From the NCBI RefSeq assembly GCF_006345805.1, contig NC_043004.1, positions 63,860,001-63,924,000 on the forward strand: 64,000 nucleotides of DNA, given 5' to 3'. The position numbers and the translations under genes are program-made. Numbering within the stretch: position 1 is the first letter of the stretch; the number at the start of each line of letters is the position of its first letter. This document shows positions 27,802-59,580 of this stretch, piece after piece. The notes beneath the pieces were generated by a model. The model did no database searches. It was not told the DNA's origin and saw only the letters and a list, made by a program, of their open reading frames with translations. This stretch comes from Octopus sinensis (taxonomy: Eukaryota).

Positions 27802-27847
<46 letters not shown>

Positions 27848-27933
27848 TAGTGTAGTAGTAGTAGTAGTAGTAGTGGTGTTGGTGGTGGTGGTGGTGGTGG
27901 TGGATGGTGGTGGTGGTGGTGGTGGTGCTAGTG

Positions 27934-27980
<47 letters not shown>

Positions 27981-28210
27981 GGTGGTGGTAGTAGTAGTAG
28001 TAGTGGTAGTAGTAGTAGCAGCAGCAATAGCTAGAGAAGGAGGAGGAGGTTTAATGTGGTTGTAGTGCCAGAGAGAGATTTTTTAAGTATTGATTGTTGT
28101 TGCTGATGTTATTATTATTATTATTGCCGTTCTGTCATGGATGCAGCTGCTGCTGTTACTGTGGCTGTTACTGTGGCTGCTTCCGCTTCTGACTTTGAAA
28201 TATATTCGAC

Positions 28211-28393
28211 CTATATTCGCGAACAGTGTCCATAATCCGAATCGTCCATTTCCACGCAGTCGAGACCTTCTCTACATGGACAAATGTGTAAGGCGTCCTT
28301 CAAAATACACAGTTCTCCCTCGTCGCGCATGCGTCGACATACCAAATGTCCAGCTGCTCTCTGGCCCTTGAAACTTGGCTGGTACGCAAGAAT
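28211..28393 (-). CDS. Last coding exon of a prokineticin/astakine-like (colipase-fold) Cys-rich protein
   Basis: Acceptor atctttctctttctag|ATT; reads ILAYQPSFKGQRAAGHLVCRRMRDEGELCILKDALHICPCREGLDCVEMDDSDYGHCSRI* (60 aa, TAG at 28213-28211), in phase with the upstream exon. Confidence 0.92.
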   Translation of the reverse strand: MLAYQPSFKGQRAAGHLVCRRMRDEGELCILKDALHICPCREGLDCVEMDDSDYGHCSRI

Positions 28394-29304
28394 CTAGAAA
28401 GAGAAAGATATAATTCAATACATACTTTGTCAATATTAGTAAGACAGAATGGGTGACGTTGATGGGTGTCAATCTGTTCGTATGCAGAGAAGAGAAATGG
28501 AAACTGGGGCTTCAGGACTGCGCTATCGTCAGAAAAATAAGGGAAAAACAGTGCAAAATGTAACGTCCTTTTTCTTCTCTCTCTCTCTCTCCCTTTTACT
28601 CTCTCTTTCTCTTTCTCTCTCTCCCTCTCCCTCTCTCTTTCTCTCTTTCTCTTCTTTCTCTCTCTCCCTTTCTCTCTCTCCCTCTCTCTCTTTCTCTCAC
28701 TCACAAACACACACAAAAGAAATAACAATCACGAAGCATTAGATTTATCTTCACCCTACGGCACATGAAATTACATTTACAAACATTATTGCAAATTTTC
28801 CCCGACGGAGATCCCCTTCGTTTCTTCATCTAAGGTTTGTTTTATTTGTTTGCGTTTTACCGTTGAAGATAATGCTTCTGATTGAAATACAAACTCAATA
28901 ATTTCTTGGAAGGAGATTAGTCTATACCAACATTTCCAGTAATTCACTGGTATTTTATCGTATTGAACCCGGAAGGATAAAAGGGAGGATTTGAACTCAA
29001 ATAGTACCGAGCCTTAAATAGATGCCCTGTTTTCTAGGAATTCTACCATTGAAATCTGATATTATTACAACACTAGCGATAACGCAATCGCTCAACTCAT
29101 TCTCCTATTTAATTTTATGAAAAATCTTCGACATTTTAAAACCTAAATGTGTTTTTAAGTTAAATTTCTGCTTTAATGCATTCGTCTTTAAATCGACATA
29201 TTAGTGATAACAAGCTAACAAACATGAAGACAGCATAAACAGCTAACAAAATAAATGTTCGTGTATTCCCTCACCCTTGAAAGACCTAAACCCTATAACA
29301 AAAT

Positions 29305-29520
29305 ATATATACATTTCTTTACTGCTCACAAGGGGCTAAACATAGAGGGGACAAACGGATTATATCGACCCAGTGCGAAACTGGTACTTTATTTATCTAC
29401 CCCGAAAGGATGAAAGGCAAAGTCGACCTCGGCGGAATTTGAACTCAGAACGTAACAACAGACGAAATACCGCTAAGCATTCTGCCCGGCATGCTAACGT
29501 TTCTGCCAGCTCGCTGCCCT
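29305..29520 (-). mobile_element. SINE inside the intron of the Cys-rich gene
   Basis: gaaaggatgaaaggcaaagtcgacctcggcggaatttgaactcagaacg...gctaacgtttctgccagctcgc. Confidence 0.88.
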
Positions 29521-30179
29521 CTAGAACAATATATATATCATTACTGCTATCATGAATTTGACGAAAATGGTGCGGCAACATAATAACTCTTTATGCCAGC
29601 ATTTTCCACTCGGGGTTCCCCTGGAAACTGAGGTTTCACGGAAGGTTACCGCCTGTTACACGTTAAATAGGAATAAATAACTATACGTCAATGTCACTGG
29701 GAGCCACTTTTGTACTTAGTTCTATATTCCTAATTTTCCTATACATGCACGACATATTCGTTAATTTTGCAGCTGTTAGTAGCAAGGTACCCCACAGTGA
29801 AAAAATGGCTTGTTAGTATAATTATTTAAATCTAAACAAGGTATTGGTTGAGACAAAATTCTTTAAGCTTCCTTTGTGATGTCTGATGGATTTTTCGTGC
29901 TAAAACTTTCAAAGAGTTTTAAGATACTTTAATATTTTGTTTATGAAATTTAACTCTATGAAAATAATAATAAATATTACTAAACCTATATATTAAATTT
30001 TATGTTGGGTTATGTAATTTCATGTCCTGAGACATGGACTGAAAGTACACGAATCTTCTACAAAGCTCTTGAAAATTGAATGCAGTGTGTTACTTAAGTC
30101 CACTAGTTGTGAACAGCTGACATTTTGTTATACCCTTTCACAAGCAAAGATGCTGTGTTTAACAACAAATCATCTAGTG

Positions 30180-30885
30180 TCTCCAATAGGCACAAGATAC
30201 TAAATTCTAAGGGAGCATTATTTTGAATCCAGAGCTTCACAAGTACTTGGTTTAATGCCTCTTAAAGGGATGAAAGATAAACTCGGCTATATTGTTATTT
30301 GAATTCAGAACGTATAGACGTTATGTATTTTGTCTGACGTGCTAATGATTCTATCAGCTCACGCCTTAACACCAATAATGATAATAATTCCTTTCTCCTT
30401 CAAGCACAGAGAGATAGATTTCATAGACAGCAACTAGTTGACTGCATGGACCTCAGTGATCAACAAGATACTTATTCTACCACTCAGTATGGATGAAAGT
30501 CAAAGTCATCTTGACGGAAGTGTACAGAGTAGATCGCATCGAATATTTGAGCGATCACTGGAGAGGTGAAAGGCAAATTTCACCTCAGCCGGATTCTAAC
30601 TTGGTATGTAAAGAGCCGGAAATAACACTTCAATGAAATTCTCCAACGCTCTAAAGATTCTACCAATAATAATGGATTCAGATGTTAGCAAAAAGCTAGT
30701 AATTTTAGGGTAAGGAATAAATCGATGTCATCGACCACTTTGCTCGAATGGTATTTATTTTATTGATCTCCAAAGTACGAAAGGCAAAGTCGAATTCAGT
30801 CATACTTTTACTGGGAACTGAAAGGCAGAAGAAGTCCGCTAGCCATTTTGTTCAGCGCAGAAATGATTTTGCCGGCTCGTTGCCA
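30180..30885 (-). mobile_element. Cluster of strongly diverged SINE fragments (intronic)
   Basis: Degenerate gatgaaag(g/t)caaagtc motifs at ~30270, 30495, 30568 and 30780. Confidence 0.6.
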
Positions 30886-31001
30886 ATTCTACATATAATA
30901 AATGTTTCCGATTTATAGATTCAGATTCAGTTTACTTAAACTGAGTTCTTTTATAAAATTCAGCTTATGATATTAAAATATAGACACTACAAACAACTCA
31001 C

Positions 31002-31139
31002 CTCTGTGACACAGCAATGGTCTGGAGGACATGACGTCAGATTCTTTGGCTGGCATTCCTCTTCATTATCTAATGGAAAACTATCATCATCTGTGGTTTC
31101 TTCTTGATCTACAGGAGCAACAGGATTCCCATAGATGAC
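31002..31139 (-). CDS. Internal coding exon of the same prokineticin/astakine-like gene
   Basis: Acceptor atttcttgcgtctttcag|GTC, donor GAG|gtgagt; 138 nt, phase 0/0; reads VIYGNPVAPVDQEETTDDDSFPLDNEEECQPKNLTSCPPDHCCVTE. Confidence 0.92.
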
Positions 31140-31909
31140 CTGAAAGACGCAAGAAATATAGACACTTTGAGAACAAATCTCAGCCTTATAACTGTAAAAA
31201 ATCCTTAATTTACTTCTCTACCGCAATACTCCAAGAAAACCAGAATACTCTTCTTATTTCATTTATATATTCATGATATATCCAAAGCTGTATTGTTATT
31301 ATGTGGGGGTCATTAATCCGTGTTATAATTGGATACAGGATTTTTGCAACATTAAGTGTTAGATATAATTTATCTTTAGCCAGTATTATTCTTAATATTT
31401 CTAATATTTCGTTGTGTGATTTTGTTTCCTTTTTAACTGATCCTATTCGAAATATTTTATTATTGAAGTGTTCTTAAGGGATATAAATTCGTTGATGAGA
31501 TTCATTGGAATATTTGGAATATAGGAGCCAATGACGTTGTCTCTAGCGGTAGAGTGTTCTGCTAGATATATCATCCAAATATCTTTGAAATAACATCTTA
31601 TTGTCTTAAAAATAAAGACAGATATATCGGTCGATGTATTCCATGATATCCGGAAAAACTGGAATGTCATCACTGTCTGCAAACACATTTTATCACAGAT
31701 TTGCTTCATTAGGGGAAACAATATTTTTCTAAATATTAATTTTTCGTTTTCATGTACCTAAACGCACACATTGAATGTTTGTAAAAGTCATGTTTTTGTG
31801 TAAATGTAAGAGGCGTTTTGAAGGAGAGGCAATAATAACTATCCTAAATTATTGTAATTTTAGTATATCATTATTATACATCTAATAAGTCAACCTGCTA
31901 ACTTTTTAT

Positions 31910-36682: not shown

Positions 36683-36742
36683 TATAAACATGTTAATATA
36701 TACATATACATATATGTATATGTATATATTAACATGTTTATA
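36683..36742. repeat. Perfect 60-bp palindrome without spacer
   Basis: tataaacatgttaatatatacatatacata|tatgtatatgtatatattaacatgtttata. Confidence 0.95.
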
Positions 36743-36903
36743 CTCACATATATGTATATGCATAAATATATATATGCATATACATACACATATATATATG
36801 TATATATATATACATATGCATATACTATATATATATGATATATATATATATATTATATATATATGTGTGTGTATATGCATATATATATAGATATAGATAT
36901 ATA

Positions 36904-36955
<52 letters not shown>

Positions 36956-36985
36956 TGTATGTATGAATATATATATGCATATATG

Positions 36986-37036
<51 letters not shown>

Positions 37037-37274
37037 TTATACATATCTATTATATATATCTATATTTATATATACATATCTATATTTATACATATCTCTC
37101 TCTCTATATATATATATATATGTTGTATATATATATATGTTTATATATATATGTATATATTATATATATATATATATATGATATATATATATGATATATA
37201 TATATATATAATATATATTATATATATATATAGAATACATATATATATATATATATATATATAATGTATATATA

Positions 37275-37356
<82 letters not shown>

Positions 37357-47239: not shown

Positions 47240-47638
47240 ACAGATGAAAGAAAACAGAAAGGAGAATGCAAAAAAGAAGCGGAAGATACAAAGAACAAAG
47301 AAGAAGAAGAGAAGGAAGAAGAAGGAGAAGAACAAGAAGAACAAGAAGAACAAGAACAACAAGAACAAGAAGAAGAACAAGAAGAACAAGAAGATGAAGA
47401 ACAATAATAATAACAATAATAATAATAATAATAATAATATAATAATAATATGAAGAAGGAGAGGAGGAGGGGACATGAAGAAGCAGAAGAAGAACAACAA
47501 CAATAATAACAATAATAGTAATAATAATAATAATAATATGAAGAAAAAAGAGGAGGGGTGGTGGAGGAGGAGGACAGGACAGGAAGAAGAAGAAGACGAA
47601 AAGAAGAAGAAGAAAAGGAGAAGAGGAAGAAGAAGAAC

Positions 47639-47678
<40 letters not shown>

Positions 47679-47842
47679 TGAATAATAATAACAATAATAA
47701 TAATAATAATAATAATATGAAGAAGAAGAAAGAGGAGGAGGTGGTGGAGGAGGAGGACAGGACAGGAAGAAGAAGAAGAAGAAGAAGAAGAAGAAGACGA
47801 CGAAAAGAAGAAGAAGAAGAAGAAGAAGAAGAAGAGAAGAAC

Positions 47843-47879
<37 letters not shown>

Positions 47880-48014
47880 TGAATAATAATAACAATAATA
47901 ATAATAATAATAATAATAATATGAAGAAGAAGAAAGAGGAGGAGGTGGTGGAGGAGGAGGACAGGACAGGAAGAAGACGAAAAGAAGAAGAAGAAGAAGA
48001 AGAAGTAGAAGAAC

Positions 48015-48051
<37 letters not shown>

Positions 48052-48139
48052 TGAAGAAGAAAGAGGAGGAGGAGGAGGAGGAGGAGGACGGGACAGGAAG
48101 AAGAAGAAGAACAACAACAACAACAACAATAATAATAAC

Positions 48140-48170
<31 letters not shown>

Positions 48171-48270
48171 TGAAGAAGAAGAAGAAGAAGAAGAAGAAGA
48201 AGAAAGAGGAGGGGAGGGGGAGGAGGAGGAGAGGACAGGAAGAAGAAGAAGAGAAGAAGAAGAAGAATCT
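47240..48270. repeat. Higher-order compound triplet array (AAG/GAG/AAT), ~90-190-bp units
   Basis: Marker ggaggaggacaggacaggaagaaga and variants recur at ~47565, 47750, 47950, 48080 and 48225. Confidence 0.92.
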
Positions 48271-49654: not shown

Positions 49655-51585
49655 CTGCTGGAGCTTTGCGATACAAATGGACTTTACATCGCACGCACTC
49701 ATTTTATGCACAAAGGTGATCATACAACAACGAGTATGCATCCAAGTTCCAAAGTTTGGCACTTGCTGGATTATGTCATCATTCGCAAGCGTGACATCTA
49801 TGACATTTGTAATGTCAAGTCCTTTCATGGATCGGAATGCTGGACAGACCACAATCTGGTGTGAGCAAAGTTCCGGATAATGATTAGAGTGAAAGAGAGA
49901 AGAGGACCAGTCAGCATTCCCCGGTGTCTGAATGTCCACAAGAAATATGATGCTGTGTTGAGGAAAGAGCTTCAGACTCGCTTGTCCAGCATTCAAATAC
50001 TGTAGCATGGGAAGATTTTCGAGACCAGGTTATTCAATGTGCTGCTGAAACACTGGGATATGCTACTTCCAGACACAGAGACTGGTTTGATGAAAATGAT
50101 ACTGAGGTTCAGCGACTATTTGCTGTATAGTGTCATGCCCACAATATATTGCTACACAGAGGAGTTTCTGCTGTGAAGCGAAATCTAGCACTTGTCCACT
50201 ATAGTAGTGTAAAATCACTACTGCAGCGATCTCTCGGGAACATGGAGAACACTTGGTGGGAGGATCTTGCTCGTGATGTCCCGGTTGCTGCTGATGCAAA
50301 TGACAGCAATAAGCTTTACCATCTTATGAAGCAAGTTTATGGGCCTAAGAGTTCCACTTCAGCTCCTTTGCTTTCCAAGGAAAATACTTGGCAATCTTGA
50401 ATGTCCGGATCACTTTGTATCTATAATTATATCATTTCATTATGGGATGGAGGCTAGGCTCTATGCAGTTGGTGGCATGGTGGGTCCCATTCCTGTAGAG
50501 AATGGTGTCAAGCAGGGTGACATCTTTGCTCCAACTCCCTTTTCTTTGTACTTTGCTGCTGCTTTTACTCATGCTTTTGCTAAGGTTAGCTCTGTGGGAA
50601 TATATGTCAGATATCGATCTTCTGGCCGTCTCTTTAATTTGCGCCGATTTGCTGCCAGTTCAAAAGTTTTCCACTCTCTTATTCGTGATCTCCTTTATGC
50701 AGATGACTGTGACTTAATCACTCATACAGTGGATGACATGCAAATACTTATGAATCGTATTTCTGCTTCTTGCAAAGCATGTGGAGTCATCACTAGCCTG
50801 GATAAGACTGTTGTAATGTCCCAGCCTGCACCAGGAAATCCATATGTGGAACCAGCTATCGTGGCTGAAGGAAGAATTCTGAAAGTGGCAGACAAGTTTG
50901 TCTACATAGGCACCACACTCAGCCGTTCTTGCTCCCTGGATGATGAAATACCATTCAGGCTGCAGAGAGCAACTAATTCCTCCCGGTCTTTTCAGTCTCG
51001 TGTCTGGTCCCAGCATGGTATCACAAGACAAACAAAAATTGCTGTGTACCGTGCATGTGTATTGACATCGCTCTTTCACTCATGTGAGATATGGGCCCTT
51101 TACAAACGTCTGAATGTTGAGTGGACCTTAAAAACTCCAGACACACAGATCCGGAGGACAGCTGATATCTTGAGTATTGAGATGATTGTGCACAAGCTAT
51201 ATAGGGAACTTGTGAAGGGAAAGAGACTCCGGCAGAAACCAAGACTGAGATTATGGACTGTGTCAAGTCTTCATTAAAGGTCTGTGATATGCAGGAGCCT
51301 GACTGGGAGAACAATGCCTGTCACCACCACTGATGGAGGACACTTTTAAAAGAGCAAGTATTCAGCATGAAGAACTTAAGCGTGCTGCTCGAAAGCACAC
51401 TGGTGGTGTAGTGAATGGGAAAAGCTTGGTCTGCAATGTTTGCAGTCGTATATGTTTGTCAAGAGTAGGGATCATTAGCTACCAACGGAGCCGCAAATGC
51501 AAAATACAAGTTAGTCCCAGAGCGCACAATGTTTCTGAATGTCAGCAATTGTCATCCTCGGTCACGATTGGACGGCCATCATATA
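49655..51585 (+). mobile_element. 5'-truncated, internally deleted RTE-clade LINE
   Basis: APE end MHPSSKVWHLLDYVI...ECWTDHNLV; RT GVKQGDIFAP..FSLYF ... DLLYADDC ... LDKTVVM ... FVYIGTTLS; 3' end followed by (TATG)n. Confidence 0.92.
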
Positions 51586-58914: not shown

Positions 58915-59492
58915 TGATAGAAGAAGAAGAGAAGAAGAAGCGAAGAAGAAGAAGAAAAGAGAGAAAAGAGAAGAAGAGAGGATAGGAAACAAGAAGAATG
59001 AGGAGGAGAAGAGCGGCAGTGGAGGAAGAAAGGAGAAAGAGGAAAGGAGGAAACGGAAAAGAAAAAAGAAGGAGAAGGAAATTCAGAAGAAGGAGAAGGA
59101 GAGGAGGAAGAAAGAAGAAGAAGAAGAAGAAGAAGAAGAAGAAGAACAAGAACAAGAACAACAACAACAACAACAACAAGGGAATTGTGGAGAAATTGAG
59201 AAATGAGGGGAGGGAGGAGAGGAGGAAACGAAAAAGAAGAAGAAGAAGAAGAAGAGAAGAAGGAGAGGAAGAAGAACAAGAAGGAGGAGGAGGAGCAAGT
59301 GGAGGAAGAAATGAGAAAGGAGGAAGGGAGGAAACGGAAAAGAATAGGAAGGAGATTCAGAAGAAGGAGAAGGAGAGGAGGAAGAAGAAGAAGAAAGAAG
59401 AAGAAGAAGAACAACAACAACAACAACAACAACAACAAGGGAATTGTGGAGAAATTGAGAAATGAGGGGAGGGAGGAGAGGAGGAAACGAAA

Positions 59493-59523
<31 letters not shown>

Positions 59524-59580
59524 AGGAGAAGAAAAAGAAGAACAGCAACAACAACAACAACAACAACAAAGAGGAGAAGA
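58915..59580. repeat. Purine-rich compound repeat with ~260-bp higher-order duplication
   Basis: caagggaattgtggagaaattgagaaatgagggg occurs at ~59176 and ~59435. Confidence 0.9.

Follow-up and report, generated by a model that had tools for sequence, protein, structure and literature searches.

The DNA analysed here is a stretch of 64,000 nucleotides (nt) from Octopus sinensis (contig NC_043004.1, positions 63,860,001 to 63,924,000), which we call the window, and it holds on its minus strand the last two of the three coding exons of the gene LOC115214763, the first exon of which is far upstream and beyond the window. Judged from sequence comparisons and a predicted structure, the product of this gene, which belongs to a mollusc-wide clade of the prokineticin/astakine superfamily, is probably secreted and acts as a cytokine- or hormone-like ligand that would not use prokineticin receptors, and we put the probability of this at roughly 0.78. 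Public databases already have the gene model, its splice junction and its label as a prokineticin-domain protein, and this is therefore a correct rediscovery of what was already known. As a discovery it carries little weight and its remaining value is modest. The parts of the gene that lie in the window are as follows.

31002-31139, minus strand: coding exon 2 of 3, 138 nt or 46 codons, with the last four signal-peptide residues, the acidic arm, cysteines (Cys) 1 to 4 and the end ...CCVTE, equal to residues 22-67 of XP_029639647.1
28394-31001, minus strand: intron 2, 2608 nt, phase 0, three codons past the CC doublet
28211-28393, minus strand: last coding exon, 183 nt, 60 codons and TAG, with the long C4-C5 loop, Cys5 to Cys10, the CPCREGLDC motif and the end ...YGHCSRI
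31140-64000, minus strand: part of a very long intron 1, with exon 1 unmatched in the window and long gene ranges in relatives

Exon 2 starts at 31139 after the acceptor ...tgcgtctttcag/GTCATC (that is tctttcag/GTC, with the slash at the exon boundary), translates to VIYGNPVAPVDQEETTDDDSFPLDNEEECQPKNLTSCPPDHCCVTE and ends at 31002 with the donor GTCACAGAG/gtgagt, that is GAG/gtgagt. The last exon starts at 28393 after the acceptor ...ctctttctag/ATTCTT and translates to ILAYQ...GHCSRI, with its TAG stop at 28211-28213. The coordinates, strand and translation of both exons match exactly those of the initial annotation of this DNA, which had proposed two minus-strand exons with consensus acceptors, a GAG/gtgagt donor and a phase-0 intron of 2608 nt, and all of this was borne out when the minus strand was read again. 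The exon translations also gave the joined product that it had described, 106 amino acids (aa) with ten Cys spaced 7-4-0-21-9-8-1-5-10. Its claim of a hidden, two-exon gene did not stand, as the gene is modelled in RefSeq for both octopus species, O. sinensis and O. bimaculoides, the orthologue already goes by the name of a prokineticin-domain protein in UniProt, and there is a third, upstream coding exon beyond the window.

The 106 aa match O. sinensis XP_029639647.1 (LOC115214763) at every position from residue 22 to residue 127 (100% identity), and the annotated junction, CCVTE/ILAYQ, is the same as the one proposed initially. When a collection of 5.8 billion proteins was searched, O. bimaculoides LOC106870902 (127 aa), listed there as an uncharacterized protein, was found with 99% identity over the full length and a single-residue difference (L/V), and orthologues from Argonauta and from an RNA sequencing (RNA-seq) assembly were returned as well. 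The O. bimaculoides orthologue is XP_052826107.1 and its UniProt entry, A0A0L8IEB8, is named 'Prokineticin domain-containing protein'. The 90% cluster includes XP_029639647.1 and A0A0L8IEB8, together with one model from O. vulgaris and an earlier one from O. bimaculoides, and none of the database entries assigns a function. By tblastn, the last exon was a 100% match to residues 68-127 of protein P0001. RefSeq exon 1 puts MALSNFVQLTWTCLAMGIFLH ahead of VIYG, which makes a precursor of 127 aa, and this signal-peptide exon was not found within the 64-kb window by tblastn or by a fuzzy six-frame search. The gene is annotated over some 109 kb in O. bimaculoides and some 155 kb in Argonauta, and since exon 1 is not in the window, 31140-64000 is thus part of a very long first intron. 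The layout, in which a signal-peptide exon is followed by an exon that stops three codons past CC and then by a last exon, is kept in Gigantopelta (a vent gastropod), Dreissena (a bivalve) and Haliotis (abalone), and the position of intron 2 is common to the family members of these three. An older O. bimaculoides model, XP_014772624.1, in which exon 2 is extended upstream through its acceptor, is mis-built at the 5' end. The corresponding part of the window, 31140-31208 on the minus strand, has a TAA after 22 codons and no ATG between, and therefore that extension cannot apply here and the three-exon model is valid. The O. vulgaris model CAI9726469.1 (100 aa, P0027) ends in ...AAGHLGK without Cys5 to Cys10, although the last exon is intact at 28211-28393 in the window, and it is probably a gene model that was mis-built at its 3' end.

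Transcripts from relatives agree with this gene structure. L001, an RNA-derived contig of 1196 nt from a related cephalopod, carries a complete and uninterrupted orthologous open reading frame (ORF) of 130 aa, and its DNA homology to exon 3 of the window starts at the position that corresponds to 28393, which is the predicted junction. The Sepia esculenta relative (P0004) is found on contigs of about 950 nt (L002-L007) from larval RNA-seq runs, the larvae having been sequenced for stress-exposure studies. As these ORFs are uninterrupted on RNA-derived contigs, relatives do make spliced transcripts. When the window was compared with L001, the proportions of nonsynonymous (pN) and synonymous (pS) differences were 0.149 and 0.79, respectively, in the Cys domain and 0.38 and 0.60 in the acidic arm. 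Thus, the Cys domain is under strong purifying selection and the acidic arm is under weaker constraint. For the Cys domain pN and pS are reported and not a numeric dN/dS ratio because dS is saturated between the available cephalopods. That the two exons are only a chance pair of ORFs or a pseudogene has next to no probability. The one point in its favor is that there is no start codon in the window, and it is ruled out by the exact identity to the RefSeq protein, the transcripts of relatives, the intact orthologues across Mollusca and the strong purifying selection.

At the superfamily level, the reading of the product as a 10-Cys colipase-fold member of the prokineticin/astakine superfamily holds on profile comparisons and on the modelled fold, which is also what the initial annotation had read from the Cys pattern. 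The core spacing C-x4-CC ... C-x9-C ... CxC-x5-C (4-0, 9, 1-5) is common to the window protein, the astakines, the prokineticins and their spiralian relatives. Profiles of the mollusc family, which comprises the octopus protein and its relatives described below, were compared by hhalign with reference sets of arthropod astakines, deuterostome prokineticins and spiralian prokineticin-related peptides taken from the supplementary data of Thiel et al. 2021 (PMC8557429), with the Cys-rich prohormone-3 as the negative control. All sets were trimmed to the Cys domain, and a spider sequence and a louse 'Bv8 precursor' entry were left out of the reference sets. The results were as follows.

Mollusc family and astakines: 96.0%, E 4e-9, with the aligned Cys all in register
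Mollusc family and deuterostome prokineticins: 95.5%, E 1.6e-8
Mollusc family and nemertean relatives: 97.3%, E 2.7e-11
Mollusc family and the prohormone-3 control: 0.4%, E 0.14

On the same scale, astakines and prokineticins score 96.7% against each other, and therefore the mollusc family is as near to each of these groups as the groups are to one another. An AlphaFold2 model built from an alignment of 16 sequences had a mean confidence (predicted local distance difference test, pLDDT) of 81.5 overall and 87-94 in the Cys domain. The top matches of this model in the PDB by Foldseek were MIT1, U33-theraphotoxin (a spider MIT-like peptide), colipase and Dkk1, with probabilities of 0.99-1.0 and template modelling (TM) scores, relative to the target, of 0.40-0.66, and a model from a shallower alignment gave the identical list. 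The colipase fold, for which the initial annotation had proposed structure prediction as a check, is thus what the predicted structure points to, with MIT1, colipase and Dkk1 among its first matches.

Dkk1 among these fold matches raises the question of whether the protein could be Dickkopf-like, with only the second Cys-rich domain (CRD2), and could bind receptors of the LRP5/6 type and modulate Wnt signalling. When the family profile was run against the PDB sequences only colipase-fold proteins were at the top, and the best match was the C-terminal domain of Dkk2 (E=0.0044), with which the motif C(K/R)P...GE.C ... C.C..GL.C is common, followed by Bv8, MIT1 and Dkk1 at non-significant E-values. 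The weak match to the Dkk2 CRD2 reflects the shared fold. Unlike the octopus protein, which has one 10-Cys domain, Dickkopfs have two Cys-rich domains, CRD1 being the extra one, and mollusc Dkk1/2/4 orthologues with both domains have been described apart from the prokineticin-like peptides (PMC6425005). The strong hhalign scores to the astakine and prokineticin sets also argue against it, although no Dkk set was part of that comparison. A Dickkopf-like role is therefore very improbable. Pancreatic colipase is likewise of the same fold class and gives weak matches, and unlike the ligand proposed here it is a lipase cofactor. The family members did not reach the Dickkopf and colipase Pfam models. 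With Pfam, the 16 family members gave scattered weak matches, all of them to colipase-fold families (Colipase_C, Prokineticin, MIT_LIKE_ACTX and the Dkk C-terminal domain), and only three of the 16 gave weak Prokineticin matches, the best at E=0.069. With phmmer, the single sequence had no match among the PDB sequences.

Several results weigh against reading the octopus protein as a secreted superfamily ligand. The search with Pfam PF06607 that the initial annotation had proposed missed the curated gathering threshold of 21.6 bits, as only the exon-3 piece was matched at 14.9 bits (E=0.033) and the full product was unmatched, and none of the family members carries a precomputed Pfam domain. 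The Foldseek E-values were only 0.01-0.1, which is expected for a domain of 80 residues. In the tree described below the mollusc clade is not nested in the astakines or the prokineticins, the deep relationships stay unsettled and orthology to astakines is not supported. Both the cleavage site of the signal peptide and the disulfide map are putative. Finally, literature searches with the gene and protein accessions, and with octopus together with prokineticin or astakine, returned no paper on this gene and no expression, receptor or activity data.

Searched exhaustively with HMMER, a set of 1.84 billion representative sequences yielded 16 proteins at E<1e-3, and every family member whose source is named is a mollusc, from bivalves, gastropods and cephalopods. 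The members are from Dreissena, Ruditapes, Mizuhopecten, Solemya, Mya, Mactra, Mercenaria, Haliotis, Patella, Gigantopelta, Bradybaena, Physella, Elysia, the octopods and Sepia. When the family profile was used in a word-indexed search, only three more mollusc sequences (at the level of P0024-P0026) and none from outside Mollusca came up. The ten Cys and the Gly that precedes the last Cys are invariant across the family. The spacing of the Cys in this family and in its relatives is as follows.

Mollusc family: 7-4-0-(19-21)-9-8-1-5-(8-12)
Astakines: 5-4-0-11-9-(15 or 28-30)-1-5-(4-6)
Deuterostome prokineticins: 5-(4 or 8)-0-11-9-(17-19)-1-5-(9-11)
Brachiopod relatives: 5-4-0-21-9-18
Nemertean relatives: 5-4-0-(8-11)-9-(7-12)

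The initial annotation had called the x21 loop unusually long and the x8 loop short, and this is true when compared to astakines and prokineticins. It is not a peculiarity of this gene, however, as both loops are mollusc-wide, brachiopods have x21 and nemerteans have x7-12 in the second loop. In a maximum-likelihood tree of 46 short domains the mollusc family was one long separate branch with a split support of 93/98. On these sequence data the molluscan proteins make up a tight and distinct clade below the Pfam threshold, and this is the modestly new point of the analysis. Two members are unusual in their size. P0012 (608 aa, on a 57.6-kb ENA contig) has nine separate matches to the family profile and may thus be built of several repeats. 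P0010 from Elysia chlorotica (271 aa) has an N-terminal extension of 190 aa, possibly an artefact of its annotation.

The posterior salivary glands of octopods are venomous, and the protein could in principle be a salivary or venom-type effector used on prey, comparable to the MIT-like peptides of the same fold that are known from snakes, spiders and scorpions. The nearest solved structures of the fold include venom peptides and NCBI names two bivalve relatives 'venom protein 164-like', although these 'venom protein' names come from similarity alone. We consider this improbable, as bivalves without venom and gastropods that graze have members of the clade with an unchanged gene structure, and as larvae express the Sepia relative. 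The Cys domain is also under strong purifying selection and does not have the diversifying pattern that is typical of venom genes. In addition, tblastn found a single copy of the gene in the window with no tandem expansion.

The precursor has the secreted, single-domain architecture of the superfamily. The RefSeq precursor of 127 aa has a signal peptide, the exon for which is outside the window, and a single Cys-rich domain, and the segments encoded in exon 2 are as follows.

31128-31139, minus strand: VIYG codons, C-terminal end of the signal peptide; with RefSeq exon 1 a hydrophobic helix is modelled at residues 2-24
31056-31127, minus strand: acidic N-terminal arm NPVAPVDQEETTDDDSFPLDNEEE, 24 aa with ten D/E and zero K/R, predicted to be disordered
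31002-31055, minus strand: first part of the Cys domain, Cys1 to Cys4, including an N-L-T sequon at 31035-31043

The initial annotation had taken VIYG for the end of a signal peptide, and this agrees with RefSeq exon 1, which precedes VIYG, and with the modelled hydrophobic helix. By the -3/-1 rule the signal peptide would be cleaved at VIYG/NPV, and GNPV is invariant in three cephalopods. In the AlphaFold2 model, residues 33-36 and 38-46 of the arm had a pLDDT below 50 and its last three residues (EEE) are in a block that averages 54. The acidic arm is cephalopod-specific, and in the members from Sepia, bivalves and gastropods its place before Cys1 is taken by a conserved DG-x-LV-D-x-x-D-(D/N)-C segment. 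An N-x-S/T sequon is present in the C1-C2 loop of all three cephalopod orthologues. Thus, the precursor consists of a signal peptide, an acidic arm of about 24 aa that is mostly predicted to be disordered and one colipase-fold domain. It would be secreted upon cleavage at VIYG/NPV, and the mature protein, probably with five disulfides and N-glycosylated at N-L-T in the C1-C2 loop, would act as an extracellular ligand, cytokine- or hormone-like, through a receptor other than a prokineticin receptor. The N-terminus of the mature protein would be NPVAPVDQEE..., which is 24 residues ahead of Cys1 and has no AVITGA, in agreement with the absence of an AVIT motif that had been noted initially. It has been shown that the AVITGA N-terminus is needed to activate prokineticin receptors (PMC8398477) and that orthologues of these receptors are absent from protostomes (PMC8557429, PMC8398477). 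Without AVITGA and without prokineticin receptors in protostomes, signalling of the vertebrate type would be impossible and another receptor would be needed.

The long C4-C5 loop has an FKGQR motif at 28333-28347 on the minus strand, of which the cephalopod orthologues keep KG(Q/E)(R/K), and it may be a processing or a binding site. FKGQR lines up with RKGKR, a dibasic motif in the prokineticin-related precursors of brachiopods, and the family has been catalogued among spiralian proneuropeptides (PMC8557429, PMC6425005). On these grounds the protein might be a prohormone that is cut at K-G-Q-R to give two chains held together by disulfides, in the manner of a neuropeptide precursor. In the octopus, however, the site is monobasic, and at the KGQR position most members from bivalves and gastropods have G-P-(R/K)-P, where a proline after the basic residue disfavors cleavage by convertases. 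It is quite improbable that the protein is processed in this way.

Among the known proteins, the arthropod astakines (Pacifastacus leniusculus astakine 1/2 and the astakine-like proteins of shrimp and insects) are like the octopus protein in being a single secreted 10-Cys domain with CPC-x5-C and without AVIT. They differ in that the long and short loops are swapped relative to the octopus protein and in that there is no acidic arm before the domain, and haematopoietic activity and binding to the ATP-synthase beta subunit are known only for astakines (PMC8398477). The prokineticins of vertebrates and cephalochordates (PROK1/2, Bv8 class) share the colipase fold and the ten Cys, and are unlike it in having the AVITGA N-terminus, only six residues ahead of Cys1 compared to about 24 in the octopus protein, and other loop lengths. 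The prokineticin-related proneuropeptides of brachiopods, phoronids and nemerteans (Thiel et al. 2021) belong to the same superfamily; those of brachiopods have the x21 loop and a KGKR-like motif and end in G(H)C, and those of nemerteans have a short second loop. In these lophotrochozoan peptides, however, C1 and C2 are separated by x5 compared to x7 in the mollusc clade, which has an x8 second loop and groups apart from them. Mollusc prokineticin-like proteins without AVIT have already been published (PMC6425005, PMC8398477), and the oyster Cragi-prokineticins and CgAstakine are of the same superfamily and may belong to the mollusc clade.

The functional data on protostome members concern astakines only, including the oyster CgAstakine, and show that these promote haemocyte production, and the stimulation of haemocyte production and the binding to cell-surface F1-ATP synthase beta have been reported for crayfish, shrimp and oyster proteins only (PMC8398477). 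By analogy, the leading comparison for the function of the octopus ligand would be the production of haemocytes by crustacean astakine and oyster CgAstakine. A more far-reaching proposal, which we regard as doubtful, is that the molluscan proteins are a distinct branch of the superfamily missed by Pfam, to which cephalopods added the acidic arm, that they signal through a not-yet-known receptor that is not a G protein-coupled receptor, and that the cephalopod protein is possibly a haematopoietic growth factor of the white body. To our knowledge, no receptor is known for protostome prokineticin-like ligands and no growth factor has been identified for cephalopod haematopoiesis. The mollusc-wide clade, with its fixed Cys spacing, kept intron position, strong constraint and scores below the Pfam threshold, is a clean candidate set for expression and receptor-fishing work.

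The window has other features as well. The region downstream of the stop codon is as follows.

27802-28210, minus strand: start of the 3' untranslated region or downstream region, which holds a trinucleotide microsatellite at 27802-28018

This array (Tandem Repeats Finder consensus AGT on the plus strand) starts about 190 nt downstream of the stop codon. Very long microsatellites are also present at 47298-48267, 58919-59542 and 36696-37350, and these are AAG/AGA arrays of 0.6-1 kb and an (AT)n array of 650 nt. In the Argonauta hians locus (P0002, about 155 kb), a gene for an immunoglobulin-domain protein of 402 aa is nested in an intron on the opposite strand, and the portion of intron 1 within the window showed no such nested gene. 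Rfam gave no match on the whole window. Most of the long ORFs in the window are translations of microsatellites and among the other long ORFs there is one exception, a plus-strand ORF of 312 aa at 50339-51277 with a partial reverse-transcriptase domain (RVT_1, E=3.4e-6, slightly below the Pfam cut-off), which from its sequence looks like a decayed fragment of a non-LTR (long terminal repeat) retrotransposon within intron 1.

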